Assembly: GCA_013239625.1 (NCBI GenBank)
Contig: MU055594.1
Location: forward strand, 16,062,445 to 16,126,444
Source of the DNA: Lama guanicoe
Lineage: Eukaryota
DNA: 64,000 bases
Direction: 5' to 3'
Each line of letters starts with the position of its first letter. Position 1 is the first letter of the stretch. A model generated the notes under the pieces. That model saw nothing but the letters and a program-made list of their open reading frames with translations, made no database searches and was not told the origin of the DNA. The position numbers and the translations under genes were made by a program. This document shows positions 13,681 to 54,850 of this stretch, piece by piece.

Positions 13681-14539
13681 GTGTCTTCAATATTAAGGAG
13701 TCTGCATCCCCTGGGTTCTATGTTGTGTTTATAGTGTTGATATTTTGAGCTCTATAGACAGACATGAGCTCTGTGGACAGTGTGTCAAGACTTGGGAGTG
13801 TCCAGCCTCTTAGTTGTGTGTATCCCCTTGATCTCTTTTCCTTCACTTTTGGCCCTCTCACCCTCCTGAGGAGGTGTTTCCTGTCGCCTGTGGATTGATC
13901 ATCCATTTGGTTTTACCGTTTAAGTATTAATCAAAACGCGATGAAGTAATTCCATGAGTAAAATTAGCCCTTTAGTTACCAGCATTGATTTATAAGATAC
14001 TGTAGAAGTAAAGATAGAAGATGTAATTTTTAGATTTTTGTTTTTATTTATGCAGGAAAACAGATGCATTTCTGTTAACCCACAACATAATCGTCCTCTT
14101 ACTGTCTTGTGTTCACAGATCTGAGCGACAGATGGGCAACCACAAACGTGACCTTATTACACAAAAGTCAGGGACCCGGGAACTTGACAAAACAGCCCCG
14201 GGTAATACTCCCATGATACCCAGTGACCTGTCCTGGCAGACATCAGAAATGGAAGAAGCTAACAATTAAGGAAAAAGACTGACACTGTTAAACAGTCTTA
14301 ATCTAAAGGCGGTAAATTAAAAAGCCATCCTGAGTTTGCTTTAGCCATCCTGAGTTTGCTTTAGGCAGGTAACAATGGAACTTTTCCTTACAAACTGAGA
14401 TGACCCAAGTTTCTGTCCGGAAAAAGACCACTCTACTGATACTTATCCCAGATGATCGGCTTCATCGTAGAAGTATCTTCACCACGTTTCACGGAGATTT
14501 TAAAACCGTCAGCTTACATTCCTTGAAACGCGCTGTCCT

Positions 14540-15110
14540 GCCGACCTTCTGCTCGTCCCCTCCCCGGAAGCCAGCGCGAGGGGCCAAAGCGCTGGGAAAC
14601 AGGTGGCGCAGAACCCGCCGCGGCTTTCGATTGACGCTGCTCCAAGCTAGCCCGCACTGATTGGCTGGTGGGAGGGACCCATCAGGGCTGTCGTTGAGGA
14701 TTGGCTGGTTCGCGGAGGAACCCTGTTTCCGGTAGCTCGGCGCGCAGCCCCGTCGCCGCCATGGCGACCGGCGAGCGGGTGGTGGCGCCGCCTCTGTGGC
14801 CCGTAGAGGCCCGGTTGGCGGCGCTGCTTCCTGACCTGCTGGTCTTCAGGAAGCCCCGGGGACCGGAACCTGAGCTCGCCACGGCCCAGGGCGTCCTTCT
14901 TGGCGTCCACGTGACGGGTGAGGGAGAGAGGAGGCCCGCTGCTCTCCCGACCTGCGGGAGGGGCAACCGTTGGGCCTCAGCTCGTAGGGGCCGCTGCGGT
15001 TATGGGCCTGGCTCCGGAGCGAGCAAAGCAAGCGCGGTTTCACCGCATTTCCCGCCGCCTCCGCCGAAAACCGAGGGTCATTTTCAGAGCAAGAAGCTAA
15101 CCTGACGTAG
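14540..15110 (+). promoter_or_regulatory. CpG island promoter of the ADCY10-like gene
   Basis: Abrupt GC/CpG-rich block. Reverse CCAAT boxes CTGATTGGCT (14657-14666) and GGATTGGCT (14698-14706); ETS-like CCGGAAG (~14564-14570); perfect Kozak GCCGCCATGG (14755-14764). Confidence 0.85.
14761..14917 (+). CDS. ADCY10-like exon 1 (start of C1)
   Basis: MATGERVVAPPLWPVEARLAALLPDLLVFRKPRGPEPELATAQGVLLGVHVT(G); donor G|gtgagg, phase 1. Confidence 0.88.
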
Positions 15111-18100
15111 CCCTGGAGTTCACTTCAGAGATGAGGAAATTGAGGCTCAGAAAAGGGAATGGACTTTTTCGGTGCCATACGGCACACTTTGAACCCAAGT
15201 GTTTTCCAATAAGTATTCCGCCTCGTCTAGTGATTTTATTCACTCAATTAATTCATTCTTTGAGTCCATAAGTATGTACCCGCCATTGTGCTAGGTGTTA
15301 AGAGACCTGGCAGCTACTAGGAGGGTCGTTCATTTAACAAATACTTAGGGAGTTTATGTCATGAATATGAAAATGAGTGATTCAGGTGCCTGTCCTCGAG
15401 GAGCTTACCATATGAGTTCTCCATGAAGCTTTAATCTTGTTACTGGTTTTTCTGCTCTTCATATCTGGGGAAATCCTTTCTCTTGGTCAGAGAGCCTTAA
15501 GAGGGTGTGGCGGGAAAGCAGTAGCTGCATTCCGATGGAAAAGGCTCTTGTGGGTGAATCTTCACCATCTACAGCTCCTGGAAACATGGGAAGGCTGGCC
15601 CTCTGGACTCCTAGAGGCAGCAGCAACCAGCCTGGCCCTGAGTACTTGCTAAGTAACACCATATTAAAGAGTAGAGAAATTACTCAAAAATGAAGAAGAA
15701 GAATTGTGAAATTACTCATATTAAAGAGATCTGCTTTCTTTACACTGTTCCAATGCGAGATTAAGGCCTAAAAGTTTGGGATTTGCAGCTAACAGTAATT
15801 TTTGCTTTGTTGGTCAGGGTTTACAGCATTAATGGACAGATTCAGCCTGAGCTGCAAGTCGGAACATGACATGGACAAACTGGCCCACATCTTCAGTTAT
15901 TACATTAGTGACATTGTGGAGCGTGAGTGACCCTTGTACGGGAACAAGGAAGTGTGGTGCTGGGCTTCTGAGGGTTTGTAACAGAAACAGGCCTGAGGTG
16001 CTTAAAACGGATACTGAAGGTCATTCCTTTAGTGTCACTCATCTTTTATTTCTTAAGGTTGCCACTGACAAGCTAGATCTTTCCATATACCTGCCATTCT
16101 ACCCAATCTCACATCCTATTGACCCAGTGTTCAGAAAGAGGAGGGGAAATGCTAATTTTAATTTTAACTCTGCATGTTTGTATTTTATTTTGAAATGAAG
16201 TATTCCTAAGGCTGTCTCTTTTAACAAAAATACAATGTGCTTCATGTGTGTATATCAGGTATAATTTACAACACACCTCATTTTTTTTTAAATTTTATTT
16301 TATTGAGGTATAAGTCAGTTTACATTGTTGTGTCAATTCATACCTTCCCATTTGGTTACTGCATTTTGATCCTGTGAAGTAGGAGTGAGTGTTTTATTTT
16401 CTGCCATGTATTAAGCTTGTGGATATTTGCCTAATCTAGGAGAAAAACTTATTTGTGCAGTAAACTTGTTTTGAGTACCTACTATGACATACACCGTAAT
16501 AGGTGCAGGAGGTACAGAAACCTACTTTTGAGGCGTTTTCAGTCTAGTTAGGTCTACCTAACAAATTATACTGGCTCTGCACCCTTTAGTACTAATGTAT
16601 GTACATTCCCTTCCTTTACTGACAGTGTCCCATAGTTACTCCATCATTCTGAGATTCACCAGAATAATTACCTTGTGGCCTCTCCTTAAGCCACATAAAG
16701 TGGCTGTTTGACTAATCCCTTACCACTGAGGATTCTGCCTGAGGTCTTTCAATGGACGTCATCAAGTTTAGGGGAAAGGGGGAGATAGAAATTATGTATC
16801 ATGTATGTATTATAACGGAGTTGCTGAGTACTAGAAATACATGGGAAAACAAGACACAGTACCTGCCCTCTTGTAGGTTCCAAGGAAGGAAGATAGTAAA
16901 CAAGATAATTTCAGAGTATGTAGTCTACAAAGGAAATAAATAAGGTGTTGTGGGAAAAAAGAAAAGAATTGTAGGGTGAAAGAGTTTCTGTATTAGGGTG
17001 GTCACAGGAGACATCTCTGAGAAGGTGCTGTGTAAGCTGAGACATAACGGATGTGAGGAACGCTGTGTGTGGAGCTAAGGGTAGAGCATTTCAGGCAGAA
17101 GAATGCCAAGTAAAAAGGTTCTGAGGTGGAGAAGGCTTGGCATGTTCTAGGAACTGAAAAGGCCAGTGTGGTTAGAGCATAGTTAGCAGGGAGAAGAGTG
17201 GCTTGAGGTGAGACTGGAGAGCATCAAGCTCCATAGAACATAGAAGTTTGGATTATTTATTTTTGTATGAAGGGAAACTGTTGAAAGACTCTAGCAGGGG
17301 AGTGATGTGATCTGATTTACATTTTTAAAGCTCATTTTAGCTGTCTCCTGGAGATAGAAACTATGTATCATGCATGTATTTATAATACCAGGAACTGCTG
17401 GGTACTAGAAATACACAGGAAAGTCAGACATGGTACCTGCCCTCATGGAGATTGTTTTATAGGGAACTGATGGAAGGTAGATGGTAAAACTGGACGCTGG
17501 AAGAGGCAATTGGAATAATTGTGGAGAGAAGTTAGAGATTTAGATGAGGTTAGTGGTTCTCTACTTTGGCAGCACGTTAGATAACCACTTAGGAGACTGT
17601 TAAAACTCCTGATGTCTAGACTTCACCCCATATCAGTTAAATCAATATCTTGGGGTAAGCCCAGGACTAAGGATTTTTCTTACAGACAATTTCAGTGTGC
17701 AGTAAAGGCTGAAACTATTAGTCTCAAGGTGTGGTAATGAAGGGAGCTGTATGGAGATGAACTGACTTGAAATATATTTTGCAGTTCAACAGACAGGATT
17801 TTCTAATGTATTGGATTTCCGTGGGAAATGGTGAGGAAAACAATTGTCAACTTTTTTGGCTTATGTAACCGAATTGAAGGTGATGTCACATACCGAGATG
17901 GGAAAGACTAGGCTTTGAGGAAGAAAGTCAAGGGTTCTATTTTTAATATATTGAGTTTGAGATGTTAGTAAGTCAGTCAAGTGAGGCAACGAAGTTAGCT
18001 GTGATTGAGCTTAGAGAATAGATCTTTAGAGATGAAAAGTGAATTGATGGCATAAAGATTTTATTTAAAGTTAAGAACTGATTGAGTCCACATGGGGGGA

Positions 18101-21100
18101 CTGTAAAGAACTCCAAGGGGAGATTGTGATTATGATTAGGGAGAAAGAACCTACAACAGCAACTGTGAAGCAGTCAGTCAGGTAGGCTATTTGGTGTTCC
18201 TGAAGCCAAAAGGGCAATAGTGTCTCTAGAAGGAGAGCGCTGCCCTAGTGGATTGAAAATAAAAGGTGTCAAATACAGTGATATCAGAAAAATACTAAAT
18301 ATAGCAAGATGAATGCTTTGGGTGGTTTTGATAATTTTAGTGAAGTGGTAGAGATGGAAGTTCAGATTGGAATAAACTGAGAATTTTTTTCTTTTGGCTG
18401 GGAATATAACAGAAAAATTGAGCTCATAGCTAGAGAAGAAGGCAGAGTCAAGAATAGGTGGGTTGATTTTGTTGTGTGTTTTTTTTTTACAAAGATATTA
18501 ATGGGAATGATGGCACAGAAAGAACATAAGGAAGGGAGTGAAGTTATTGAGAGGGTGAGGGGGACTAGGATCCAGAGCACAAATAGGGGGATGGCTTTGA
18601 AGATACCAAGAGGGCTTTCCTTCTGTTTTTAGAGAAGTTGGGTATAAGAACAGACATATCTGAAGAGAAGCTAGGGGAAAGGAAGAGGGAGTCTGAACCT
18701 TGGAATGAACAAATTGACCAGAAAAGATACAAAGGGAAACTCAGAAGGCCATTCTTTTCATCATATGTGATTCTGCCATGATCCAGCATATCTGATTTTG
18801 ATTCATTTTCCCCTCTTGCTTGATTTCAGATGTGCTCTGTTTTGGAGGGGATATCCTAAATATTACAGGTATTTCTCAGTTTTTCTGAATATTTAAAGCA
18901 CCCTGAAGTGAGGAAGACTGTATTTTAGGTGGAATTTGGCATGTTTATTCAGCATTGTTTGATTATTTTTCTAAGTGCTGGGCCCTGAGGAAACACAGAT
19001 GAGGAAGACAGTCTCTGCCTCAAAGGGTCTCCCAGTCTAATGGAAAAGCCTTGTCCATGTTAAGCTCCCATGTATTTTACAGTTTGTTCAGATTGACAGA
19101 AAAATAAGTGCCTTTAAAGCATTCGTGAGAAAACTTATGAGAAGCTTGGTCATTAATAACAGAAGCTACATATAGGAGAGGGAGAGGAGTCAAGAGTCTC
19201 CTATCTGGAGAACTCTTGTGATCATTTACAGCTGTGTGCCACAGAGCTGGCCTGTCTTTTCATTTAAACTTAATGAAACCACTTAAAATCTTAAAATTCA
19301 ACTTGAATGTAAACATATATTTTGTGGGCCTCTTAGCTAGTACCCCGCCCCTTCTGTTAGGATACTGGTGGGGAAAGAATTACCAAAAATAGCTTTAAAC
19401 CTTAGGAACATTTCAGCTTCTACTTAGTCATGTTTTTATATGCTCAATGGTTTTTTAAGATTAAGGCAGTATTTTAACCTAACATAATGTATAGGGCGAG
19501 AAACCTTGCGTGACACCTTGCATGATACCTTTTGCATTATTGAGGGTTCTGCCATGGCAAGTGAATTCAAATATTTGATCTCTGTCAGCCTGTCTTGTGT
19601 GTCTACAGGGAATGTGCTCCTTGCACTCTGGACAGTGGAACAGAATCAACTGAGTGACATCATTACCCTGGTGGCAAAATGCAGTCTGGAGATACAGGAG
19701 AAATTTGGCATCTGCCACACCAGAGAAGGGCAGGACCTGCAGTTAAAGATAGGTAGTAGCTATTAAGAGTGATAAGTTGGGGGGGGGGGGGGAAGGAAAC
19801 ATTAAAAATTTTAAAGATAAATGACAACTTGGAAAAAAAATATTTGCGACTCATATCATGTAGACAAAGGGTAAATTTTTCTATAGAAAGAACACCTAGA
19901 AGTTAAGAAAAGACTAACATTCTAGGAGAAAACTGAGCAAAAGAATGAATAAATAGCACATAAACAAAGAAGTCATCTCTTGTAATGTGTGAAAAAACGG
20001 TCAACTTAGTAATAAGAAAAATGCCAATTGAAAGTACATTGAGATCATTCCCTACCTACAAATATGGAAAAATTCAGATGCTGGACACACTGTCGGTGAG
20101 GCTGCGAGGAATAAGCCTTCTTACACAGTGTTGATGGGAGTCAGCAGTGGTGTAACTTCTGTAGAGGGTGATCCAGTCATCTCTACCCAGATTACAAATG
20201 CATTTATTCTTCAGCCCAGCAATCCCACTTCTGAACATTTATCCTATGGGTATACCTGACTGTGCATTAAATATCATGTATATAAGATTATTTATTGCAA
20301 TACAGATTGTGATAAAAGGTTGAAAACAATATCTATAGTAGACTGGTTAAATAAACAATAATATGTTTATTCACTGAGATTCTCTACAGCTTTAAAAAAA
20401 AAAGATGTTCTGATATAACAGTATCTCCAAAACATAGATGAGAAAAAGCAAGATGCAAAGCACTGTGTTTAGTATGCTACCTTTTATGCAAGTAGGAAAA
20501 ATAATAATTTTTCTTATTTATATTTGTATAAAGAAACACTGGAGAGATATATAAGAAACTAATAAAAGTCACCTATTAGGGGAAAATAGTGTAGATAGGT
20601 ATATAGATGGAATCAAGACTTTTTAATGTATATTCTTTATGTAGTTTGGTTTTTGAGCTATGTCATTGTATTACATAATCAAAAATATAATACAATACTA
20701 TAGGAAAAAAGCTGTACACAGAGGCGAAAGTTTCACCAGTGGCAGAGTCAGGATTGGAGGGTTAGCTCTAGACACAAAACTCCAGCTATTCATTTGTATT
20801 TTGAGGACTAGTCAGTAGTGAAGAATCATATTCTGAGTTATATGGCATCTATCCTGTCCTACCATCCTTTTTTAGTTCTTCTGATTTTTGTTTTATTGAT
20901 AGATAATTCATATCTGATACTGTACATAGACATATTTATACAATTTTGAAACCATCACCACAATCAAGATAATGAACATTCAGCACTCACTAAAGTTTCC
21001 TGTGCCCCTTTATAAACTCTCCCTCTCATCCTTCGCCTCCCCATCCCCAAGCAACCACAGCTCTCCTTTCTGTCATTAGAGATTATTTTGCATTTTTAAA

Positions 21101-24100
21101 GAATGTTATATAAGTGATATCATATAGTAGGTACTTTTNNNNNNNNNNNNNNNNNNNNNNNNNNNNNNNNNNNNNNNNNNNNNNNNNNNNNNNNNNNNNN
21201 NNNNNNNNNNNNNNNNNNNNNNNNNNNNNNNNNNNNNNNNNNNNNNNNNNNNNNNNNNNNNNNNNNNNNNNNNNNTATTTATTCACTTTTTGATCAGCAA
21301 TTGGGTTCTCAGGTTTTGACTTGCAAATAAAGCTGTTATGAATATCCATGTACAAGTCTTTGTATGGACATATCCATATGTTTCTCTTGGACAGACACCT
21401 AGACATGAAAGGTCTGGGTCATATAGTAGATGCGTATTTAACTTTTAGAGAAATTGCTAATATTTCTTCCAAAGTGGTTGTACTATTTTACATTTCTACC
21501 AGCAGTGTATGAAGGTTCCAGTCTCTTGCCAATATTTATCCTTGTCTGTCTGAAGAACTTTCTTTAAAATTTCTAATAATGTGGGTTTGCTGGAGATGTG
21601 TTAGTTCAGCTTTTGTGTGTCTGGAAAAAATTCACCCGTTTTTGAAAGATACCTCTACTAGGTATGGAATTCTAGATTGACAGGGGCTTCCCCCACCCCT
21701 TCTTATATTAAAGCTGTCATTCTACTGACATCTAGCTTGTAATGTTTCCAACAAGAAATCCTTATTTTTGTTTCTTTGTATATAATGTCTCTCCCTTTTC
21801 CACCCTAGCTGTTTTCAAAATTTTTTTCTCTGTCACTAATTTTAGGCAATCTGATTATCATGTGCCTTGGTACAGTTTTCTTCATCTTTCTTATGCTTGG
21901 GACCTATTGAGATTATTGGATCTATAGGCTTCTAGTTTTTGTAAAATTTAGAAAATATTCTGCCATTATTTCTTCAAATAATTTTTTCTCTCTTCCTCCT
22001 CCTCTGTCTAGCTACACACATATTAGGCTGCTTGAAATTGTCCAACTCACTGATGCTGTGTTTATTTTTTTTTGTCTTTTTTCTCCCTGTGTTTCATTTT
22101 TGGATGGTTTCTATCGCTGTGTTTTCAAATTTACAGATGTTCTCTTTTGCAATATCTAATTTGCCTTTGATCCAATCTAATGTATTTTTCATCTCAAGCC
22201 TGATAGTCTTCATCCATATGAAGATACCATATCTTCCATGTCCCTACTTGTTCAGTCTTTTCTCTAGGTTCTTGAATATGTAGAATATAGTTGCAGCTTT
22301 TTTAATGTCCTGATCTCCAAATTCTGTCATTTGTATTATTCTGCACTGGGCTTGACTGATTGATTTTTCTTCTAATTGTGAATCATATTTTCCCTTTTCT
22401 TTGCACACCTCGTAATTTTTGGTAGGTGCCAGACATTGTAGAATTTAACCTTGTTGAGTGTTGAATTTTTAAATATTTCTATAAATATTCTTAAACTTAG
22501 TTCTGGAATGTAGTTGACTTGATACTTTCAGGTTTTACTTTCAAACTTTGTTGGAGGGGCCAGAGCAGTGTTTAGTCCAGAGCTAGTTTTGCCCTGTTCC
22601 TGAGTCAAACCCCTTACGGGTACTGTACCTAATGTCCTGTGAATTATTAAGTTTGATACTCTGGCTAGTGGGAATAGGAACTATACCCGGCCCTGTCTGA
22701 TATTAAAGATTGTTCCCTCTAATCTTTTCAGGTGGTTCTTTCTGTAGCCTCAAGTTGTTTCCTCAGATTGATTCACTTATCAGTACTCAGCTAAAGACCG
22801 AGGGAGACCCAGTTCTCTGGAGTTCTCTCTGTCTACTCTCCAGTAGTCACAGTGCCCTACAAACTCTAACCACCTTGGCCCCTCAGATTCCTAGTTCTGT
22901 CTCCTCAACTCGGGGACCCCTCCAGGCTATACCTGGGTTTCTTCTCTCCAAGCTGTGTACTGGAAACTCTCTAGGCAGTGAGCTGGGGTATCAGAGGGTT
23001 CACCTTGTTTGTTTCTCATCTCTCAAGTATACTGTCCTTAATTACTTGATGGCCAGTATCTTGAGAACTGTTGTTTCTGTTGTTTCGTGTCTTTTTTCCC
23101 GGTTCCATGATTGTTCCAGGTGTTGTGGTAAATTTACTACCTGTTATTCTGTCTTGGCTAAAAGTATATGTCTCTGCCGTTCTTTTAAAACTACTTTTCG
23201 CTTGTTTTTAGTGTAGATTGGGTGACTGACTTACCTAAGGGCAGACTTCTCTTGGTTATAGGCATTTCTTTTCTGGCAAGCAAACCAGTTTTTCAGCCCT
23301 ATTAGCAGTAAGAAATCCAGGGCAAGAAAAACAGGAGGCAGAATAAAAGCGTATGGCAGAGCCCATGCCTGGTAAAATAGTGATTGTCTACTGTCTCAGT
23401 GCTGCTTACATGTGAGGAGGACTGGTGTGGTCAGCAGTTTCTGAGCATAACCATTTGGTCTCTGCCATCAGGACCTAGCTGTCCTTTAGAAGAACAATTT
23501 AGAAACAAAACTCTCAGACACCTAAGATCTCTTTTTTCTTCCCTCATACAACTCAGGCTTATTTGAATGTCTGTCTCTAGGTGTGTTTAAGACAAAGAAA
23601 TCTGGAGCAAGGTGTTACTTTTGAGATTGCGCTCACCTAATACTTCATGGCAATAACGAGATTGGCATGATGCATAAAACCATGTGAGGATTCCAGACCC
23701 CGCCCTTTGCAAAGTTTTCCAACTGAGTTTGGCTGTTCATCACGTGTCTCCTTTTTCCTGGATAGGTCTGTCTGCAGGACGGATTTCCCAGGTTATTGTT
23801 GGAGACGAGCAGCGACAGTACCTCTTGGTGATTGGGCGGGATGTGGACGGTGTCCAGTTAGCTCAGCGTTTGGCTCAGGCAAATGAGATTGTCTTATCCT
23901 GGAACTGCTGGAAGCTCTGTGAACAGTACATGTTTGAAGTGGAAATCATGAGGGAGGACGAAGCTGTGAAGGTAGGAGGCTGCTCACATCCATTGAATGT
24001 CCTGCAGAGGCCTTCCTACTACCCGGGGAAGTGCTCTGGTGGTACTCACACATGGCCTGACCAAACCAACAAATGTTGGAACTCTATTTTAGAGGGAGGC

Positions 24101-39100: not shown

Positions 39101-42100
39101 CCCTACAGATAGTTTTCAGTTCCAGACAAAATCACCCAGAAGTCAGGAGACCTTCACAAATGAACACTACAGGTAGATGGAGATGCTGAGAGTGGGCATG
39201 AAGGGGGCCAGAAAGTGAGACACAGATGATCATTTAACTAGGGTATTCACCTTACCTGCAGACAGGGAAGGCAGCTGACCATCTAGGAGTGGTGACTCTT
39301 GTGCTTGGCCCCAAATTCAAGCTAACAGAGAATCAGAAAGGCAATTTTTGATTCTTTGTAGGGAAATTATTTCTTAGAGCTAGAGAAAAACTTTAATTAC
39401 TCTCAAATGCTTTGTACATACAGATTTTTTTTCAGCTATAAATTTGCCTTCTCAATTACTTTTGAACCCAGATGATATTAAAATGACTTTATTTCCATAA
39501 CCATGAACCACCTGACTTTCTAATGTCTTATCAATTTTAAATGTCGCTACCTTGAACCCATCAGCCACTCTAGAGTTTCCTATCCCATTTATCCAACCTG
39601 ATTTCTTACAGTTTTCAAACAAAAATCTATATTCCACACAAATCACCCCTACACTTACCTTTTGTCTTTGCTCACACAGTTCTCCCTTTTAAAAATACTC
39701 AGTGGCATCCACATTCTTCCACTTATCAGAGTGTTCACCATCCTTCAGAGCCCTCCTCAGTTCCCACTTTTTTTCAATCATTGTGTCTCAGAGAGATCAG
39801 CCCTCTTTTGAACTCACGGTGCCTGTGGAAATACACTGGATTAATAGCTAGAGAGGTGAATTCCAGTTTTGGTTCTACATGGTAGCTGTGAGGTCGTATA
39901 TAAGTCACTTACACTCTCTGAGCCTCAATTTCTTCATCTGTAAAAGGTAAATTTGGCTGCCTGAATGGCAAGGTTATTGTAGGATAAGATGGTAACATTG
40001 TGTAAAATAATATTCAAAGTGCCATGACAGAATTCAAATGTGCTAATAGAGAAATGTATTATTTACTGCTTTGTATCATTTTTTATGTTTTTGTGGAATA
40101 CTGTTTAATTTACTCTTCAGATATGGTCATTTCCCCATTTAGTTTGTGAGATACTTAGATTGGCTTTGGGTTTTTAAAACTCCCTAATAGGGCTTTGCCG
40201 TTATAGATCAGGTCCCTGACTTTCAAAAACTTACGGAGTGATTGAGGAGAAGGATAGACATAGAATTAGTCAATTATAAAGGAAAGCTTCCTGGACAGAG
40301 TGGCTTTGAGACCTGGTAATGGTCCGGCAAGAGTGTCTGCTTTGTGGCCTCTCTCAGCTCTTCATCTTCTCTCACAAAGAACAGAGGAAGAGTTCCTGGA
40401 TCAAGTGAACCGGAGACTGGCTCAGACCAACCCGGAGAAAGATATGTTGACCACAAAGCCCTGCCACTGTGATGAGATCCTGAAGTTAGTGCTCTCACCC
40501 CTCACCCAGCACTGCTTGGTCATTGGAGAAACCACGTGTGCATTTTATTACCTGCTGGAGGCTGCTGCTGCCTCCTTGGACCTGTCAGATAATTATATGG
40601 TGAGCAAGCTCTGCTCTCTGCCCCTGAGCTGAGCCAAGTGACTGAGGGAATTTGTTAGGATTTCTTACTGTCAAGTAGCCTGGAATGAAAAGTGGAGGAA
40701 AATGGGAGAAAGGAGCTGTAATGGGCCTAGGAGAAAACATGAAGTGGGAATGCGGTAGCGAAGGAGCAGCACGTGCTGTCGGTGCTGTCCCTGACTCCTG
40801 CATGCGTAGTCCATTTAGTCCCCATTTCTAACTAAATCCAGCCCCAGTTCAAACTTGCCGAAACCTTGATCCAACCTTCACCCTAAGCACGTGCCTAGCA
40901 GCATCCGAATCCTAATCCAGTTACTCCATCTCTTGTCTTGTTTGAAGGCCTTCTTTTATTTGAGGAAGGCAAGCAGTCTTCTGGGCCGACCCTCAGCATT
41001 CTCATATTTGAAAAAGCACAAGGTGAAGATCTGTCAGTTTGAGGAGGCCACTTTCTGCCGTCTTCGATCAGAGGTGAGGATGAGGGATGACGTTGAAGTT
41101 TGGGTTATTTTCCCTTGAGGGTTACTTTGTTATTTCTTTTAAAATCTCTTTGTTTTTTGTGTGTGATGATAAATGTGATAAAAGGTTATACAAATTCAAA
41201 ACAGAACTATATGTAGAGTGAAAGAGCTCTTACTAATCCCATGTCACCCCTAGTGTAGTTAATAATGTAGTGCAAATTCCACCAGCTGTACACATACAGT
41301 CATATCATTATTGTTTTCCATTTTTTACAAATAGAATCATATTCTGTATTCTTTCTTCTGCAGCTGACTTTTATTCCTAATAATGCAGATTGAACATATT
41401 CACATATTGGCATATATCCAATCGTAGTTGTAGCTGCCAATACTACATTGTATCCATATGTCAAATTTATTTAATCATTCCTTTCTACATGCACATTTAA
41501 GTTATCTCTAATTTTTGGTTATTATAAACATTGGTACAGTGAATATTCTCATAAATATCTCTTTACTCCCTTGTGAGAGTGTTTCTGTAAGAGAAATTTC
41601 CAGAGGTGGAAATGCTAAAGCAGAAGATATGAATATATTTAATAAATATGTTGCCAAATTGTCTGGCAGAATATTGTGTCAATTTGAGTTCTTCCCATTT
41701 CTTCGCATCCCTACCAACACCAAATATTATAAGTCTTCTTTGTACTTGCTAATCCGTAAATGATAATTATATTTTAATGTATATTTCTTAATTAATAAGG
41801 TACTTTTTTATATGTTTATTGGTCATTTATTTCTGTGAATTACCTTTTCATGTACTTTTCTCATCAGAGTGTATATAAACTAATTTTCGAGTATGGGGGA
41901 GTGGACAAAATGGGTGAAGATGGTCAGAAGGTATAAACTTCCAGTTATAAGTTTTGGGGATGTGATGTACAGCATGTGACTGTAGTTAACAATTCAGTAT
42001 TGTATATTTGAAAGTTGTTAAGAGTGTAGATCTTAAAAGTTCTCATCACAAGAAAAAAAATGTAACTGTGTGGTGCCAGAATTTAATTAATCTCATTATG

Positions 42101-45100
42101 GTGATAATTTTCCAGCATATACATAATGTTGAATCATTATGTTGTATTACTAAAACTAACAGAAGGTTCTATGTCAGTTACATAAAAATAATTTTCACAT
42201 TGTACACCTTAAACAATGTTATATGTCAGCTATATCTCAGTAAAGCTAGAAAGAAAAAAGGAACATACATTTCAAAGTCTCCTCCCTACCCCATCTCTAA
42301 GCTGCTGTGTCCCCTCCTCAAGGTTATATATCTTTGTTTTCTACCAGAGGGGCTTAGCATACATAAATGCATACAATCTCCCCTCTTCCTTTGTTATATA
42401 CAAATAGGAGCTTTCTATACTCCATTCTACTACTTGCTTTAAAAATAAATAAATAATATGCCTTGTATATCATTCTATATCATTTATAACAAATTTCCTC
42501 AGAGAATGAGATTTGTATAATGAATAGAAATTCTGGGGAAAGCATGCCATGAGACATTCCATTTTCAAAGAACACATAGGAGTAAATGTATTTATTCTGT
42601 ATGAATAACTCAGGACAACTCAGCAACTTCTCCCAGCCTCATTCCTGCTAAATCCAACAGAACAAAATGTGTTGGAATAATTATTTATCAATTTATAAAT
42701 AAAGACTCCCTAAAACCATGAGGGTGTTTTGTTACAGAGCTGAGCTTTAAAATTAAAAAAAAGTAAATAAAAACTAATTTCAATGTAAACCTCAAGATAC
42801 CCTGATTAGGAGAATAAACCTAATGTGTACAATGTCTTTAAACACCAAAGGGATTACTAGAGTTGTCCACAGTATTGCATTATTTATATTTCAAGCAAAA
42901 GGTCTTTGAAGCAAAGTGAAATAATTATTTCTTTCTCTTTATAAAAAAAGAATTATTGTGCAGTCTTCCCAAGATTGTACTGAAATCACCTTGGACTTTA
43001 TCACTTTTTTGGTTGATTTAGCCTTAGAACATGAAGGTACATGATAACTTCAAAGTGGTTTCTCAGCTCCTACCCCTACATGCACTATGGCAGTACAACC
43101 TGTTTATGAAGTGAGATACAGGATTAGGTGATATCTCAGATGCTTTCATTGCATCTGAAACATCTTAGTCTCTGTGCAAATGACAATCCCATCAGAGTCT
43201 GGCAGCATCACTTTATCACAGACTTCCTCACCTGCTCACTGACAAATGTGTGGGAGATGAGAAAGGAAAGTGGCTTCTGTTTTCTCACTTTTTTGCTTGC
43301 TCATGGCCCTACTGGTGCTTGTTTGTGTAGCCAGGCTCTGTTCTAACTCAGCTCACTCGAGCACCACAGTGGCCTCAAGTACACTTCCCAAAATAAAAGC
43401 CAGTGTGTCGTATCCAGACTCTTGCACTCCTCCCACATTTGCATCGCTGTTTGTCTTTTTCCCATCTCCAGGTCTGTTTCAACATGGGCCAGATCACCTT
43501 GGCCAAAAAATTGGCTAGGCAAGCCCTTCGACTGCTAAAAAGGAGCTTCCCTTGGACCTGGTTTGGTGTCATTTTCCAAACATTCCTAGAAAAATACTGG
43601 CGTTCCTGTTCCCAGAGCCAACCTTTGAACAACACTAGTGAGAAGTGAGAAGCCTGGTCAACTTGCCCTGGTTCCATTTAGGGCCACAGAGAACTAATCT
43701 AGGGCCCGGCCTGGCATTGCCTATTTGAAATAAAGAGACTCCTCCTTTCAGGCATATAACAGTTCCAGTTCGTTTACCTTACTCTCCCGGCCAATTCAGT
43801 GTAGCAAAATGAGGACTTTGTTTTTGGAGTGTGGTATTATCCTGTCTCTTTCAAATAAAGATACATATATGTGTATTGTGTGTACATATACACATAAAAT
43901 AGCAATTTAATATTATTTCTCTCGACATATACATAATATTAAATTGCTCCCTAGTTACTGAGGTATAATAATTCATAGGAAATATATTCAACCAAAGTAA
44001 CAATTCAGAGAGTGAACCTTTTTAAAAACATCTCTTAACTTTTTTCCTGGTCAAGAGGGGTGAATTTAAAAGGCATATGGGGTTAGAAGTAGTGGGATTC
44101 CAGGAACCTTTCTAGTCTGAAAGTCTGTGGATAGGTAGATTCAGATTTCTTGTGGGGAGGGACAGAGGACACTGGTGAAGAATAAGGGCAGGCTAACCAC
44201 CTGTGCTTCACACCAGTAAGAAGAAGCTGGCAGTCCTGCAGCAGCGGGTGCACTGCCTCTCCTTGCTCTGGCAGCTCTACAACCTGGAGGCCACAGCCAG
44301 CAGCCACAGGTTTGCCTGCCTGGCCACTCTTATGCAGAAGAATTCAGCCAAGGAGTTTGCCAGTGAAGCCCAGGTAAGCAAGTCCTTGTTTTACCTATGG
44401 ACCTCAGTCAGAAACCTAAAATGTTAGGGAGAGGACCCTGCTAAGTCCCTGGTTAAGCATGGTTCCATAGTAACCCAGACTTAACAGGACACTGCTGATC
44501 GTGTTGTTTGAGCAGGGTTCTCAATCTGCAGTTTATTGATGGGCTTCCAGGTGCGAGGCTATCTGTGAACTCTGAACTGAATGTCGACTTTTGTGTGTAT
44601 GTTCAAAAGAGCATCCAGGGAGTGATGGGAGGTAGAGAAGGGGTCAGAGCTTTCATCAGATTCTCAAAGAAGTCCATGATCTAAAAAAAGGGTTGGAGTT
44701 GCTGACTTAGGTAAAAAGAAGAAAGGGAAATGCGTCTTCCTAATTTTAGTGTCCATCTGTCTGTATCTCTCTTTTATCCATCTGATCAACAAATATTTGA
44801 TGAACGCCCCTTCTGTGCCAGGGACTGACCTTGGTTCCAGGGAAACAGACAATAGATAAGTGAAATATATAGTGTGTTAGGTGATAATAAATGCAATGAG
44901 GGAAAACTAAGTGGAGGCAGGAGGACATGGAGTTCTGGGAGCTGGGGGGTACAAGTTTAAATAAGGTGGTAGGGAAAGCCTTCCCGGAGCAGGTGACATC
45001 TGGGCAAATATCTGAAGGAGATGAGAGAGTAAGTCATATGGCTATCCGGGGAAGAGTGAACAGGAAGAGGGCAGAGAGAGTGCACAAGGCATGCCCTCTG

Positions 45101-48100
45101 TGTCTGAGGAACAGGCAGGAGGCTCGTGTGACTAGAGAGGAGGGAGGAGAGAAGAAGAGCCAGGAGATGAGTCAGAGAGTCTGGGGTTGGGGGTGGGGTG
45201 GCAGACGGTGCAGGCCTTGTAGACCACTGAAGGGGTTTTGGTTTTTACTCTGAAGAAGATGAGAAGCCGTCAGTGGGTTCTGAGGAGTGACAGAGTCTAC
45301 TTATATTTTAATACTGTCATCCTATTGGAAACCTAATGAAGTCAGTGTTTCAAGAAGAATGTCATCAGCGATGTCAAATTTGTGTGTAACTGATGACAGA
45401 GATCTAGGCGGCAGTTCTGAAGACCTCTGAGGAGCAAGAATCAGAGGCCTTAATTAGAGAAAACATAAAAGAGGTACAGTTTGGCCAGCATTTTGAAGGG
45501 GAAAGTCTTGGATTGGAGAAAAAGAAGAGGGATAGGTAGAGAAAGTGGTTTGCTTAAAGAACAGGCAGTGAGAATGATCAAATTAGATGTGGAGGGGTGA
45601 GAAGGAGCCTGTTTTCATAACCGGTGATGAGGTGAGTGGTGGAGACCCCAGGAGTGCTCACTGAGGGAGCAGCAAGGCGTGCAGTGGGCTCTCGTGCAGG
45701 AAAGGGATGAGGTGGAAATGTGGCGTGACTGGACAGTCAGAATATTCTGCCCATGTTTGTTGCCCCACAGGTTGTCTCTACCTATGTGGCCCTCTCCCAG
45801 CTCTCCCAGAACATGGGTGACAGGGAGAAGTGGCTGCACTGTGAGCAGATGGCCATTCAGAAAAGCACCCTGTGTTGGTTCTCCAGGGAGGGATTGTTGG
45901 CCACAGCCCAGCTCATGCAGGCCTTGGCCTACACCAAGCTCTGCCTCGGCCATCTTGACTTCTCCATCAAGCTGGGTAATGGGGCCTGGGGCTGGTGGGC
46001 CTGGGGCTTTTAAAGAGGCCAGGTTCACCACTAGAGATCAAACAATACTCTTTAACCTCCTTAGGTTTTCAAGCTCATGAGATATGCAGACACTTCAAGA
46101 AACCAGCTCTGGAGAATCTAATTCTCTCAGTTCTCTTCAGATCTGCATTTCTGAAGAAGAAGTATTAAGATCATTTTCTGTCCTTTGTATTTGTTGCCTA
46201 AGAGGGGAGGGGAGGGTACGATCTTCCAGAGAAGTTTGGAGTGGAGACGGGGATGCTGTTCCATTTCCATAGTTCTGTTCACTCCAGGAAGCATTTCTTT
46301 AGTGTGGGGAGTCAGGAGTGGAAATGCAGAGTCTAAGTTACTACATAAACCTTTTTTTTCCACTTTTCTCTGGGGAGGTAGGTAACTGCCATAGCTCAAG
46401 ACCCTGGGCATTGTCTCAGAGGCATTTTCCCATTTCCTTTGCTTGGAGACAAGTCTGATCCCACACACATGCTCTCCGTATAAGTAGAGTTAAGGAGAGG
46501 AGATCTAGAGCTTATTAAGCTGCTTTGAAGGTGTAAGATCCCCTCCTCTCCTGTACCATCATCCCCATTCTCTAGCTGGTCCCAGTGGCTCTGTCTCTCG
46601 GCAGATTTGATCTGTGTGTCCATGTGCTGGAGAGTCAGTGGGCGCTCATTTCCCAGGGTCATGATGTCCTTGGCCTGGCCTGCTTCTATTCTGCTTGCTT
46701 AGATCTGCTGCTCTACGGAGAAGGTAAATCTTGTGCAGGGCTCTGCTGTGCTCCTAAGGGGTTCAGGCCTCAGGGAGGGCCCTAGGTTTAGCAGAAAGGC
46801 AGTCATGAGCCTGTCCCTTGGGCGTGGCTGGTTCCTTGAAGTCTAGGAACCAAGTTGTGATTCAGGGGTGTCTGCCTTTCGGGTGTTTCTCCTCCCCTGT
46901 ACCACACACCTTCTGTAACACTTCCTACATGACAACTTATACTGGCCTGTTTTTTTTCTCTGTCCACAGGATGGCTGTGTCGGCCCTTTGGGGAATGTCT
47001 GCGTTTCATTCAGCACTATGAGCACAGCTGCATTCTAACTTCTCAGAGCAATGTCATGTTGGGGGTCCACGCCTCTCTGGCCATGTGGTAATGTGGGGTA
47101 CCAGAGTCTTACTTAGGGCTATTGGAAAGGGTAGAAATTTGAGGACACCATGGTGTCATTTAAGCTATTGCCTTTTGCCCTCCCAGGCAGGACTATTTCA
47201 CATCTCTAACCCACTTCTAAAGACCATTCACCTCCCATTTTCCCCTCATCTTATGGAAAGGGTTCTTTTTGTCCCTTAACATGTTTGGATTATAGTTTAA
47301 GGGCCAAGTTTAGGGTTACATTTAAGTGCTAGATAAGACATGGTAAGTCTGAATATCGTTGGTCTCCTTTTTAGTCTCCTTACATGTGAGTTAGCAGCCT
47401 TGGTCACTTACCAGAATCACAATTCTGACTGTCCAGGAGGTCATAGGGCCTTAAAGAAGTGACGGCTCTATTGAAAAGCCATGGTTGATAAGCAGGGGAG
47501 AGAGCTGAGAGCTGTGATTCTTTCCCTCCAGGTTTGCCCAGGACTCGCAGTGGAATCTGTTTGAGCACCACTTCTCCATGGCTCGCCAGCTGGTGAAAAG
47601 AACCAATGCTTCACTATTTGGTTCACATGGCTTTGTCCGATTCCTTGAGTGCCATGTGCTAATGTTACAGAAAATACCAGAGGGTGTCTTCAAGCATACT
47701 CCCTCAGAGACTCACCGCCAGGCCCTCAAGGTACCTGTCTCTCTTGTTCATCAACTGACACCTAAGTTATACTTTGACCCTGTGGTACTATTTCTGCCAC
47801 CTGCCGCCCTCCCTTACCCTTCTCCTTGCTGCCTCTGTCTCTTTTTCCTCCTTGAACCCTTTTTTTCCCTCTACCTAGAAAGTCTTTTTACCTACCTCAT
47901 GTTTCCTCCCAGATATTCTTGCATGTACATCAGGACTGGATTCCTTAACTTTCTGACTTTGCATAGCAACTCCCAATACCATTAAAACATTAACATTTAG
48001 CCCTTCTCAAAGGACCACTTCTGTCTCAGTCTGTCATTTGACATCTCCCCACAGCCAGTGCTTTCTGAGTCTAAGACATTCCAGTTTCTCTGTATCTCAA

Positions 48101-49013
48101 AACCGATTTGGGGGGCCTGCTTTGCCATCAATAACTCCTTTCTATTCCTCCATCCCTGAATGAGTATACTGAGTGTGGACTGTTGTAATGGAGTGGGGTG
48201 GAGTGGAGGAAAGAAAGTAATCCCTGAGCTAATGGACCTTCCTTTCCTTTCAGTACATTAAGGAGTTCTTCTCTCGATGTGTGACCTGCCCTGTCTATCA
48301 CCAGTGGGTCTCTGAGCTTAAAGCCTCTGTAATGAGATATGGAAGGAGAGAGTCCATCAGACCTTTTGACACCTGCTTTACCAGGATTTGGATAGAAGGA
48401 GAATTCCTGGAGGAAAATAACTCCTTTGAAGGAAATTTAGGAATACAGAGTAAGCATCCATTCCTGGAACCCTTGTCTGAGAGACAAAGAACAGTCTCAG
48501 ATTCTTACTCACAGCAGTCAAAGGCTACAACTCCAAATAAGAAAGGATGTGCAGATATGAGGATTAGTCCTTGCTCCAGAGGTAACTGTCATTCTTTCAC
48601 AGAGCTGGACCCAGCCTAGACAGACAGAGACCCCTTATATTGTTCAACCTCTCTCAGCCCTTTGTTTCAGCATCTAAGCCATAGAAAGTTCCTCCTTGGA
48701 CCCAGCTTAAATAGATTGTTCCCTTGGTGTAGCTGGTTGGTCACTAAGGGAGAAAGAAGGCCTTAGAAATCACAATGTAATATCTAAGAAGGTAAATGAT
48801 AAGATGTGGGCAAGAAAAAGAGAGGAAAGAATATAGTTTCTTGCTTTAGAGCCCAGCAAATCTTCTTTTCCAGGCCATGAGTTAAATTTGTAATTGCTAA
48901 GGAAATTCTTTGTTTTTATGTTATTCTTTATGTTCCTGCTTTCAGGATTTGTCAGAGTGGCTGATGTCAAGGAGGATAAGGATGAAGAAGAAATTCAAGA
49001 ATACATATGTTAA
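14761..49013 (+). CDS. ADCY10P1: Soluble adenylyl cyclase (ADCY10)-like paralog at the ADCY10P1 locus; 32 coding exons, about 1635 aa, ORF apparently intact, predicted catalytically inactive
   Basis: Hand-spliced exons are phase-compatible and stop-free and align along their length to sAC (WPV..RLAALLPDL, FGGDIL, KCSLEI, NCW.LC, FMF.KG, RHEYTVIG, YEGGKGYGKSQ, IFLIDEAQ, GNP.YCE, CAAVIG, DNYMA, VCFNMGQI.LAKK, GHLD, CLDLLLY). Position between NFYA and TREML1 is that of human ADCY10P1. The model needs one GC donor (33238), and the exon 21/22 junction is ambiguous. Confidence 0.9.
15818..15922 (+). CDS. ADCY10-like exon 2
   Basis: GFTALMDRFSLSCKSEHDMDKLAHIFSYYISDIVE; cag| ... |gtgagt, 105 nt. Confidence 0.9.
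16450..18650. mobile_element. L2 fragments with a nested MER5A-like element (~17550-17720)
   Basis: Purine-rich L2-like text (GAGCATTTCAGGCAGAAGAA, GGCCAGTGTGGTTAGAGCATAG, TGAGTTTGAGATG); TAGTGGTTCTC..CACGTTAGA..CTGATGTC..TGTGCAGTAAAGGCTGAAACTA resembles MER5A. Confidence 0.55.
18830..18868 (+). CDS. ADCY10-like exon 3
   Basis: HVLCFGGDILNIT(G); 39 nt, cag| ... |gtattt. Confidence 0.88.
19609..19752 (+). CDS. ADCY10-like exon 4
   Basis: GNVLLALWTVEQNQLSDIITLVAKCSLEIQEKFGICHTREGQDLQLKI(G); 144 nt. Confidence 0.9.
19800..23170. mobile_element. Old LINE-1 fragments (+ at about 19800-20700; - at about 20890-23170) in ADCY10-like intron 4
   Basis: CCCAGCAATCCCACTTCTG (+); AAAGCTGTTATGAATATCCATGTACAAGTCTTTGTATGGACAT, TTCCAAAGTGGTTGTAC, GCCATTATTTCTTCAAATA (-). 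Confidence 0.7.
23766..23971 (+). CDS. ADCY10-like exon 5
   Basis: GLSAGRISQVIVGDEQRQYLLVIGRDVDGVQLAQRLAQANEIVLSWNCWKLCEQYMFEVEIMREDEAVK; 206 nt. Confidence 0.92.
24257..24347 (+). CDS. ADCY10-like exon 6
   Basis: LRDMRISDPFDFDEHFDKCLDYLPHYRTSA; tag| ... |gtaagt. Confidence 0.9.
24441..24529 (+). CDS. ADCY10-like exon 7
   Basis: DILRTALELDPDSALEQTLRKHIMKSLLKK; weak donor AAG|gttatt. Confidence 0.85.
25130..25321 (+). CDS. ADCY10-like exon 8 (start of C2)
   Basis: IDEGQPMEYISEFRTVTTVLVSL...GGQLSRIFMFEK; 192 nt, |gtaagt. Confidence 0.92.
26034..26155 (+). CDS. ADCY10-like exon 9
   Basis: GYMFLCVFGLPGDKKPDECAHALESSFSIFSFCWENLAET; phase 2, |gtgagg. Confidence 0.92.
27408..27484 (+). CDS. ADCY10-like exon 10
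   Basis: KLVSISITNGPVFCGMVGAVARHEYT; 77 nt. Confidence 0.92.
27592..27781 (+). CDS. ADCY10-like exon 11 (end of C2)
   Basis: VIGPKVSLLARMITAYPGLVSCDEVTYLRSMLPAYNFKKLPEKMMKNISNPEKMYEYLGHRRC; 190 nt, |gtgagt. Confidence 0.92.
28266..28321 (+). CDS. ADCY10-like exon 12
   Basis: IMFGKRHLARERNQNHPLL; 56 nt, |gtaagt. Confidence 0.9.
29053..29206 (+). CDS. ADCY10-like exon 13 (Walker A)
   Basis: DREKELEAFQMAQQRCLHLKKGQAVLYEGGKGYGKSQLLAEINFLAQKEGH; GxxGxGKS at 29136-29159. Confidence 0.92.
29361..29550 (+). CDS. ADCY10-like exon 14
   Basis: RVLPLKLKEADSKQRFYAIQTLMAIFFEIDTCPACYRQECLFKQLHGMVEEPLHCLFNDLFFVK. Confidence 0.88.
30748..30834 (+). CDS. ADCY10-like exon 15
   Basis: FPLSFRVSHMDDLARQKKVKACFFQVLQK; 87 nt, |gtgggt. 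Confidence 0.88.
31466..31737 (+). CDS. ADCY10-like exon 16 (Walker B)
   Basis: AVRETPLIFLIDEAQYMDAASWEFL...VVSIPQELQ; hhhhDE at 31487-31504. Confidence 0.92.
32282..32418 (+). CDS. ADCY10-like exon 17 (STAND GxP motif)
   Basis: IYLLRRCFGNPLYCEVLCQDLLSKNILLFHDLQKEEVETSKWETLS; 137 nt. Confidence 0.9.
33112..33237 (+). CDS. ADCY10-like exon 18 (GC donor)
   Basis: ANAMKSTMYSISPASSEDQDLYVCTVKDDVNLDTVLLPPLLK; frame requires AAG|gcaggt. Confidence 0.75.
35461..35730 (+). CDS. ADCY10-like exon 19
   Basis: EIAVNQLDQLNPEEQLLVKCAAVIGHSFHIDLLQHLLPGW...KEKRKP; 270 nt, |gtgagg. Confidence 0.92.
36591..36920 (+). CDS. ADCY10-like exon 20
   Basis: VAASPLRLPE...AAWELWPKAQQVALHLECACFLQDLACRCGSCQGGDFVPFHRF...LPSPQ; 330 nt. 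Confidence 0.9.
39109..39172 (+). CDS. ADCY10-like exon 21 (small, boundaries ambiguous)
   Basis: tttttttccctacag| ... AG|gtagat; open from 39109 (DSFQFQTKSPRSQETFTNEHY) or from 39113 (VFSSRQNHPEVRRPSQMNTT). Confidence 0.55.
40380..40599 (+). CDS. ADCY10-like exon 22 (acceptor at 40380, 40358 or 40385)
   Basis: TEEEFLDQVNRRLAQTNPEKDMLTTKPCHCDEILKLVLSPLTQHCLVIGETTCAFYYLLEAAAASLDLSDNYM|gtgagc. Confidence 0.85.
40948..41073 (+). CDS. ADCY10-like exon 23
   Basis: AFFYLRKASSLLGRPSAFSYLKKHKVKICQFEEATFCRLRSE|gtgagg. Confidence 0.88.
41140..42480. mobile_element. LINE-1 fragments (-) with a nested L1 3' end (+, about 41890-42260)
   Basis: CTTCCAGTTATAAG..GGGATGTGATGTACAGCATG..GTAGATCTTAAAAGTTCTCATCACAAGAAAA..TGTACACCTTAAAC..TATATCTCAGTAAAGCT is a typical L1M 3' end. 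Confidence 0.7.
43472..43644 (+). CDS. ADCY10-like exon 24
   Basis: VCFNMGQITLAKKLARQALRLLKRSFPWTWFGVIFQTFLEKYWRSCSQSQPLNNTSE. Confidence 0.9.
44217..44373 (+). CDS. ADCY10-like exon 25
   Basis: NKKKLAVLQQRVHCLSLLWQLYNLEATASSHRFACLATLMQKNSAKEFASEAQ; ctaac branch point upstream, |gtaagc. Confidence 0.9.
44770..45400. mobile_element. L2 fragment
   Basis: CAACAAATATTTG..CTGTGCCAGG..GGAAAGCCTTCCCGGAGCAGGTGACATCTG L2-like motifs. Confidence 0.55.
45771..45975 (+). CDS. ADCY10-like exon 26
   Basis: VVSTYVALSQLSQNMGDREKWLHCEQMAIQ...AYTKLCLGHLDFSIKL(G); 205 nt. Confidence 0.9.
46065..46161 (+). CDS. ADCY10-like exon 27
   Basis: GFQAHEICRHFKKPALENLILSVLFRSAFLKK; 97 nt, weak donor gtatta. Confidence 0.82.
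46605..46723 (+). CDS. ADCY10-like exon 28
   Basis: KFDLCVHVLESQWALISQGHDVLGLACFYSACLDLLLYGE. Confidence 0.9.
46970..47087 (+). CDS. ADCY10-like exon 29
   Basis: GWLCRPFGECLRFIQHYEHSCILTSQSNVMLGVHASLAM(W); 118 nt. Confidence 0.9.
47532..47730 (+). CDS. ADCY10-like exon 30
   Basis: WFAQDSQWNLFEHHFSMARQLVKRTNASLFGSHGFVRFLECHVLMLQKIPEGVFKHTPSETHRQALK. Confidence 0.88.
48254..48581 (+). CDS. ADCY10-like exon 31
   Basis: YIKEFFSRCVTCPVYHQWVSEL...ISPCSR(G); donor G|gtaact; stop at 48617-48619 if unspliced. Confidence 0.75.
48946..49013 (+). CDS. ADCY10-like terminal exon 32
   Basis: Long polypyrimidine tract plus cag; phase 1 matches the exon 31 donor; GFVRVADVKEDKDEEEIQEYIC*; AATAAA at 49163-49168. 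Confidence 0.65.
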
Positions 49014-49162
49014 TACAAACAAAAATCATCTGAAGGGACCATGATTCTTTTATTATATATAACACAAAGAAAAGTCCCAAATTCTCCTTTTTAAGATATT
49101 GTGTAGTGTGCATATTAAATATGCTAGCTGCTTACAGTCACTGCTGTCGATAGCTTTGCCAA

Positions 49163-49168
49163 AATAAA
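49163..49168 (+). terminator. Polyadenylation signal of the ADCY10-like gene
   Basis: AATAAA 150 nt after the predicted stop. Confidence 0.55.
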
Positions 49169-54553: not shown

Positions 54554-54850
54554 TTAGCTGGGTGGAGTCTGGCTATTAGGTGGATCTTGGGCTGGCTCAC
54601 AGGAGGCTCCTCCACTTTTGTCCCCTCCAGGGAAGACGACTGTGGCATATGTCACAGCCTTAGGAGGCAGAGGGGGCAAAGAGGATTGGACTGGGGTTGG
54701 GGGTTTTCCTGGCAGAGGATCAAGAGGAAGGTTGCTGTAGGTCGTATTGTCGAAGGAAGGTGGCGAGTCGAGCCTAACGTATGGTACATCCAATGGCAGA
54801 TGAGCAGCTGGTCCAGAGTCACTGATGTGGTGGACCGCCGAGGAGGGTGC
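54554..54850 (-). CDS. TREML1: TREML1 exon 6 (ITIM tail)
   Basis: APSSAVHHISDSGPAAHLPLDVPYVRLDSPPSFDNTTYSNLPLD...PPLPPKAVTYATVVFPGG...PPS*. Confidence 0.95.
   Translation of the reverse strand, partial: APSSAVHHISDSGPAAHLPLDVPYVRLDSPPSFDNTTYSNLPLDPLPGKPPTPVQSSLPPLPPKAVTYATVVFPGGDKSGGASCEPAQDPPNSQTPPS

Follow-up and report, generated by a model that had tools for sequence, protein, structure and literature searches.

The ADCY10P1 locus of the guanaco, Lama guanicoe, was analyzed in a window of 64,000 nucleotides (nt) from contig MU055594.1 (assembly GCA_013239625.1, forward-strand positions 16,062,445 to 16,126,444), and all positions given below are counted from the first letter of this window. 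It carries a predicted 32-exon open reading frame on the + strand, which runs from an ATG at 14761 to a TAA at 49011-49013. We read this frame as an undamaged coding paralog of soluble adenylyl cyclase (sAC, which is encoded by ADCY10) that was duplicated at or before the amniote stem, has been maintained by selection in most mammals and acts as a non-catalytic pseudo-cyclase, and we put the probability of this reading at roughly 0.78. The product would retain the architecture of sAC, namely two cyclase-homology domains, a P-loop nucleoside triphosphatase (NTPase) module in which Walker A and Walker B are preserved, and an extended C-terminus rich in helices. By contrast, the residues on which catalysis and bicarbonate sensing by sAC depend are replaced, namely Asp47 and Asp99 (metal), Lys334 (base), Asn412, and Lys95 and Arg176 (bicarbonate). 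The paralog would act as a ligand-binding or NTPase-driven scaffold or switch that is non-catalytic. In this respect it resembles pseudoenzymes in general, which are enzyme homologues with replaced catalytic residues and a protein conserved under selection. The existence of the gene is already recorded in databases; the novelty lies in interpreting it as a conserved pseudo-cyclase instead of a pseudogene.

Reading frame and protein architecture

Coding pieces of the gene were located by translating stop-free segments, and the junctions between them were set by frame, splice consensus and alignment score with the koala protein as a guide. The resulting coding sequence of 4776 nt encodes 1591 residues, with zero internal stops and zero N. 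The phases are compatible at 31 of the 31 junctions, and the introns comprise 30 of the GT-AG type in addition to one GC-AG intron. The hallmarks of a pseudogene, such as stops, frameshifts and lost splice sites, are absent across the 4776 nt, and usable junctions were found at all 31 sites. The start codon has the context gccgccATGg and lies within a CpG island. An earlier note on this DNA had described 32 exons in an unbroken frame with compatible phases, beginning at a Kozak ATG in a CpG island and ending with an AATAAA; splicing and translating the exons in silico reproduced each of these features, together with the first and last coordinates.

The length claimed in the earlier note, a coding sequence of 4908 or 4926 nt (~1635 residues), could not be recovered; the model obtained here has 4776 nt (1591 residues) and is gap-free against the dromedary isoform X3. 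A longer 32-exon frame is nevertheless possible, since in-frame and stop-free alternatives exist at the donor of exon 8 and the acceptor of exon 14, and alternative splice choices of this kind may explain the longer model. For exon 8 (25130-25321), an alternative in-frame donor at 25357 adds 36 stop-free nt (25322-25357) and ends in a perfect AAG/GTGAGT donor. For exon 14 (29361-29550), an alternative in-frame acceptor at 29328 adds 33 stop-free nt (29328-29360). Both extensions are used by some Camelus protein models, with zero amino-acid differences there, and they likely represent alternative isoforms. The sole GC-AG intron of the gene is intron 18 (33238-35460), which follows exon 18 (33112-33237) and has the only non-GT donor, AAG/gcaggt.

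An assembly gap of 137 N (21139-21275) lies in intron 4 (19753-23765) and leaves the coding sequence untouched. It begins 1.4 kb past the donor of exon 4 and ends 2.5 kb before the acceptor of exon 5. The end of exon 4 and the start of exon 5 are both in phase 1, and the residues they encode directly adjoin each other in the alignments to koala, dromedary and human sAC; the gap therefore hides no coding sequence, and only the length of the intron is uncertain. Both flanks of the gap (20900-21500) resemble an interspersed repeat, L1-like as judged by eye only, which, if real, would account for the break in the assembly at this point.

Homology searches against known structures and domain families, made with single exons and with database orthologues (dromedary P0064, koala P0010) as stand-ins for the whole protein, placed the product in the sAC family. 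The segment of the window at 23765-23974, corresponding to exon 5 (23766-23971), matches residues 146-215 of human sAC with an E value of 6e-19 (PDB 4CLF/4OYA), and an alignment of the dromedary orthologue with human sAC covers residues 11-468 of the latter (458 residues, E 1e-133). The family PF00211 of Pfam matches in two stretches, indicating that the N-terminus comprises two class III cyclase-homology domains in tandem. The P-loop module bears the Walker A motif GGKGYGKS (GxxGxGKS), encoded by exon 13 (29053-29206), and the Walker B motif LIFLIDEAQ (hhhhDE), encoded by exon 16 (31466-31737), both of which are kept in all copies. In the full-length alignment, the long helical C-terminal region after the P-loop module is colinear with that of ADCY10 orthologues. 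Compared to sAC, the paralog has the same domain order and a similar length (1591 residues versus ~1610 for sAC), and it aligns along its whole length with dromedary ADCY10 at 37.7% identity; its cyclase core is 46% identical to that of sAC. It differs from ADCY10 in its locus, between NFYA and TREML1, and in forming a separate clade since the amniote stem, as well as in the predicted lack of both cyclase activity and a response to bicarbonate.

Replaced active-site residues

In sAC, the metal ions are coordinated by Asp47 and Asp99 and the base is recognised by Lys334, whereas Asn412 and Arg416 act on the product and phosphate, and bicarbonate is bound by Lys95 and Arg176 (PMC12867704 Table 1, PMC12250328). 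Following the numbering of rabbit/human ADCY10, which is used throughout, residues D47, S49, D99, R176, K334, T405, N412 and R416 are present in every ADCY10 compared, from elephant shark to mammals. The window paralog differs from sAC by the replacements D47H, S49T, K95N, D99N, R176Q, K334R and N412S, and its own replaced motifs read GVHVTG, GGDILNITGN, VDGVQLAQ and KVSLLARM. Exon 1 (14761-14917), which begins with the ATG, encodes a histidine in place of the metal-binding Asp47 within GVHVTG, whereas the 39-nt exon 3 (18830-18868) encodes the motif GGDILNITG, with asparagine for K95. The first full codon of exon 4 (19609-19752) is an asparagine at the position of Asp99, followed by R176 to Gln in exon 5 and K334 to Arg in exon 8. 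Exon 10 (27408-27484) terminates in HEYT with T405 retained, and exon 11 (27592-27781), with the motif VIGPKVSLLARM, carries N412 to Ser and retains R416. Comparison of the dromedary orthologue with the solved human sAC core revealed an identical set of replacements.

The replacing residues are themselves shared among the paralogs. Position 47 is histidine in the window and in all mammalian paralogs compared, position 95 is asparagine in the window and all mammalian paralogs, and position 99 is asparagine in the window and all therian copies aligned there, with glycine in echidna. Position 49 is threonine in nearly all mammalian paralogs and methionine in squirrel, while position 176 is mostly glutamine, as it is in the window. 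At position 334, therian paralogs have arginine (the window included) or glutamine, and echidna has lysine; at position 412, serine (again including the window) or glycine is found across mammalian paralogs. T405, R416 and K144 are kept in the paralog. The turtle and alligator copies are partly altered, with glutamate or glycine at position 47 and lysine or glutamine at position 412. As several ADCY10 proteins from outside the mammals also have asparagine at position 95, R176 is the more informative bicarbonate-binding residue.

From these replacements we infer that the paralog protein would be unable to make cAMP. The alternative that survives best, a further soluble adenylyl (or other nucleotidyl) cyclase with catalytic activity, is nonetheless improbable. 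It could draw on the full sAC architecture with a cyclase core that is 46% identical, on the retention of T405, R416 and K144, and on the finding that conservation within the protein is highest in the cyclase-homology region. However, both metal-coordinating aspartates are replaced (D47H and D99N), and in therians Lys334 has become arginine or glutamine and Asn412 serine or glycine, although echidna keeps K334; at these four positions, ADCY10 has D47, D99, K334 and N412 without exception from shark to mammal. Of the bicarbonate residues, K95 is replaced as well, as is R176 in most copies. The description of the locus in the earlier note as a second sAC-family gene accordingly stands as far as family membership by homology is concerned, but a second cyclase it does not appear to be, given that both metal aspartates and the bicarbonate and base residues are replaced (with the exception of K334 in echidna, and with R176 replaced in most copies). 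Because the new residues hardly vary among copies and conservation peaks in the cyclase-homology region, we argue that the remodelled pocket is probably still functional.

Orthologues, selection and age of the duplication

A library search using exon 19 (35461-35730; query 35463-35729) retrieved the orthologues, beginning with a partial dromedary protein of 99% identity. The complete model aligns without gaps to the Camelus dromedarius protein P0064, named "adenylate cyclase type 10-like isoform X3" in RefSeq, both having 1591 residues, of which 1555 are identical (97.7%). It is 68.6% identical end to end to the koala ADCY10-like protein (XP_020855139, P0010). The gap-free alignment with isoform X3 and the shared diagnostic substitutions indicate that the window gene and the "adenylate cyclase type 10-like" predictions of the databases are the same gene; the window, which comes from another camelid, differs from the dromedary protein at 36 amino acids. 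Its identity to the proteins of the remaining Camelus species is similar, as would be expected of a camelid that lies outside this genus. A search with exon 20 (36591-36920), the longest exon with 330 nt, returned nine unnamed short proteins of 66-89% identity, none of them camelid and some possibly representing primate contamination.

A search with the koala protein revealed full-length (~1570-1611 residues) predictions named "adenylate cyclase type 10-like" in dozens of mammals, including carnivores, cetartiodactyls, perissodactyls, bats, eulipotyphlans, xenarthrans and afrotherians, in addition to lagomorphs, sciurid and geomyoid rodents, strepsirrhines and echidna. Proteins of turtles and alligator are ~50% identical to the koala query. 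No mouse or rat protein was present among the best 120 of the 221 matches to the koala protein, in agreement with Farrell et al. All 32 of the 32 window exons are represented in the protein models of 13 species belonging to distant orders, namely dromedary, whale, panda, cat, otter, bat, slow loris, mouse lemur, elephant, elephant shrew, tenrec, koala and echidna.

Within primates, the models of slow loris and mouse lemur are complete (P0063, P0077), whereas catarrhine models (mangabey, baboon, colobines and chimpanzee) are without several exons, e.g. 4, 27, 28 and 32 (P0128, P0139, P0041, P0165, P0004). As the catarrhine models are incomplete and the strepsirrhine ones complete, this comparison, made among protein models of non-human primates, suggests that the decay of the gene began within anthropoids. 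The earlier note had held that the gene was lost in humans and so overlooked; the exons missing from catarrhine models speak for the loss, but "overlooked" is too strong, as full-length predictions for dozens of mammals are already present in databases.

The paralog is conserved to the same degree as the enzyme in matched pairs of species. Between dromedary and elephant, the paralog is 87.7% identical over its whole length compared to 86.8% for ADCY10, and the corresponding values for residues 1-470 are 93.6% and 93.0%. Between dromedary and marsupial, the paralog is 69.0% and ADCY10 67.1% identical. Moreover, an open and colinear frame is found on both sides of the therian and of the monotreme split. 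Exons were also compared with introns, using the intron pieces that are translated by older, mis-joined Camelus protein models. The amino-acid differences between the window and Camelus amount to 36 of 1591 in the exons and 12 of 145 in the translated intron pieces (Fisher p 4e-4), giving a crude omega-like ratio of ~0.3, i.e. exons change ~3.5 times less. Only blocks of at least 10 codons entered this count, which keeps out alignment overhang at the ends of exons. The open colinear frame, the conservation equal to that of ADCY10 and the crude ratio of ~0.3 together point to purifying selection on the gene, in line with what the earlier note had proposed. The older Camelus GenBank records in question are named "Adenylate cyclase type 10" (P0001, P0144, P0169) and are truncated or mis-joined models of the paralog; they translate intron pieces at 37777-37869, 40276-40377 and 47364-47459 of the window.

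The distribution of conservation along the protein bears on a further alternative, in which the gene is coding and selected but function is confined to the NTPase and helical part at the C-terminus, with the cyclase-homology region at the N-terminus being a decaying appendage. The loss of catalytic residues together with the retention of Walker A and Walker B would be expected under this alternative. However, residues 1-470 are the best conserved part of the paralog, with 92-95% identity between eutherian orders compared to 83-87% for the remainder, and ADCY10 shows the same pattern. Exons 4 and 5, which encode parts of the N-terminal region, are 85-88% identical to koala. A decaying N-terminus is thus highly unlikely.

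The age of the duplication was addressed by maximum-likelihood trees under LG+G4, for which ADCY10 proteins were fetched with lungfish ADCY10 as the query. The amniote sequences fall into three groups, i.e. mammalian ADCY10, sauropsid ADCY10 and ADCY10-like, with the amphibian sequences outside all three. The ADCY10-like clade, comprising turtle, alligator, echidna, koala, eutherians and the window, is supported by 100/100, and within it, apart from ADCY10, the window sequence is sister to dromedary ADCY10-like. A duplication confined to mammals, with all mammalian copies in one clade, was rejected by the approximately unbiased (AU) test (difference in log-likelihood 123, p-AU 1e-118). As the mammal-only tree is rejected and the clade uniting sauropsid and mammalian ADCY10-like sequences is supported by 100/100, the duplication dates to the amniote stem or earlier; the old age that the earlier note had assigned to the paralog is therefore well founded. 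Separately, geckos have two ADCY10 copies, which stem from a lineage-specific duplication inside the sauropsid ADCY10 clade (P0204/P0239, P0229/P0018/P0252).

The least probable alternative is that the locus is a pseudogene here too, its open frame being a recent leftover or a model artefact and any function being exerted by a non-coding or enhancer RNA, as proposed for human ADCY10P1: Farrell et al. 2008 wrote of the second sAC-related locus that it "appears to be a pseudogene", the human ADCY10P1 transcript is regarded as non-coding or as an enhancer RNA and catalytic residues are lost, but this alternative is opposed by a 4.8-kb open frame with 31 intact splice junctions that has stayed open and colinear across the therian and monotreme splits, by amino-acid conservation equal to that of ADCY10, by exons that change ~3.5 times less than translated intron pieces and by the conservation of the replacement residues themselves.

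Several observations weigh against an intact and selected pseudo-cyclase. The orthologue proteins stem from automated prediction, a procedure in which damaged exons can be passed over. The AAA_16 match of Pfam (E 1.7e-6, 29.1 bits) lies under its gathering score of 32.6. The echidna paralog (P0151) is 50.8% identical to eutherian copies, compared to 69.8% between platypus ADCY10 (P0243) and eutherian ADCY10; the composition of this echidna sequence is odd, and fast evolution, decay or a poor model are possible. As to the catalytic chemistry, histidine and asparagine are able to bind metals, and an unusual metal chemistry is not formally excluded. On the side of expression, five RNA runs from two studies contain the 10-kb stretch 39101-49100. 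In four RNA-Seq runs labelled "reproductive system", 0.39-0.42 of the sampled words from this stretch were found, compared to the 17% of it that is exonic; the contigs therefore contain intron sequence and are no proof of splicing. In addition, a proteome of crocodile white blood cells lists an "adenylate cyclase type 10-like" protein, which might be either paralog and is a lead only (PMC10835162).

Exon map, neighbouring genes and significance

The other exons of the gene, all on the + strand, complete the model as follows. Exon 2 (15818-15922) is in phase 1, exon 6 (24257-24347) encodes the linker between C1 and C2, and exon 7 (24441-24529), exon 9 (26034-26155) and exon 12 (28266-28321) precede the exon that carries Walker A. 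Exon 15 (30748-30834) and exon 17 (32282-32418) flank the exon with Walker B. Downstream of exon 20 come the 64-nt exon 21 (39109-39172), exon 22 (40380-40599), exon 23 (40948-41073), exon 24 (43472-43644), exon 25 (44217-44373), exon 26 (45771-45975), exon 27 (46065-46161), exon 28 (46605-46723), exon 29 (46970-47087), exon 30 (47532-47730) and exon 31 (48254-48449). The coding part of exon 32 (48946-49013) ends with the stop codon, 3' of which are two candidate polyadenylation signals (49114-49168), ATTAAA at 49114 and AATAAA at 49163.

At the 5' end, the CpG-island promoter region spans 14520-15080 on the + strand, with a GC content of 0.69 and an observed/expected CpG ratio of 0.90. Reading of its sequence revealed two identical ATTGGCTGGT motifs (inverted CCAAT boxes) on the + strand at 14660-14669 and 14700-14709. 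The pair is spaced 40 nt apart inside the CpG island, 101 and 61 nt upstream of the ATG. These paired motifs look like the NF-Y sites of a TATA-less promoter, NFYA itself being a neighbour gene.

The placement of the locus between NFYA and TREML1, as given in the earlier note, is borne out on both sides. Upstream lie the 3' exons of NFYA on the + strand, a Q-rich exon at 4788-5021 and an exon at 7464-7745 that encodes the CBFB_NFYA domain (PF02045, E 2.6e-14). Three more assembly gaps are found in this upstream part (3460-3604, 4490-4661 and 6219-6422). Downstream, TREML1 (TLT-1) is encoded on the - strand, with an Ig V-set exon at 58317-58814 that matches PDB 2FRG (E 2e-54) and a cytoplasmic-tail exon at 54557-54928 that bears VTYATV, resembling an immunoreceptor tyrosine-based inhibitory motif. 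The human ADCY10P1 locus is known to follow NFYA as well, and it shares TREML1 as the downstream neighbour. Moreover, primate proteins from the locus cluster with exon 19 of the window at ~85% identity. Human ADCY10P1 is located beside the TREM cluster and has been described as a transcribed pseudogene or enhancer RNA at 6p21.1, with transcripts reported to be untranslated (PMC5940861). In contrast to these untranslated human transcripts, the guanaco frame is complete. Altogether, the gene fits the camelid orthologue of "adenylate cyclase type 10-like", of which the human counterpart is the pseudogene ADCY10P1.

The locus was called an apparent pseudogene by Farrell et al. 2008, and one sAC gene plus a pseudogene is the working view of the cAMP field (PMC2532759). 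The gene was left unstudied because of this label. Literature searches for a functional study of ADCY10P1, ADCY10-like or an sAC paralog found none, nor any paper that treats the gene as functional, consistent with the statement of the earlier note that no functional characterisation was known. Nor did these searches bring up any earlier description of a catalytically dead sAC paralog spanning the whole protein.

The data indicate that the view of one sAC plus a pseudogene holds for human, mouse and rat, but not for mammals generally. A second full-length protein of the sAC family has been kept since the amniote stem, as constrained as the enzyme but lacking the residues for catalysis and bicarbonate binding, and would offer a natural test case for the roles of the non-catalytic parts of sAC, i.e. 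the P-loop NTPase and the C-terminal region. More tentatively, and with somewhat less than even odds, we propose that most mammals, though not humans, mice and rats, carry a conserved but catalytically dead twin of sAC whose remodelled pocket for nucleotide and bicarbonate (H47, N99, Q176, R334 and S412, which are almost fixed in therians) and intact P-loop NTPase form a ligand-sensing switch or scaffold, perhaps modulating sAC or acting in reproductive or myeloid cells. If this proposal is true, a signalling component would be missing from both standard model organisms and therefore has never been studied. The biology of sAC in dog, pig, cattle, horse and camelids may involve a partner that is missing in mouse models.

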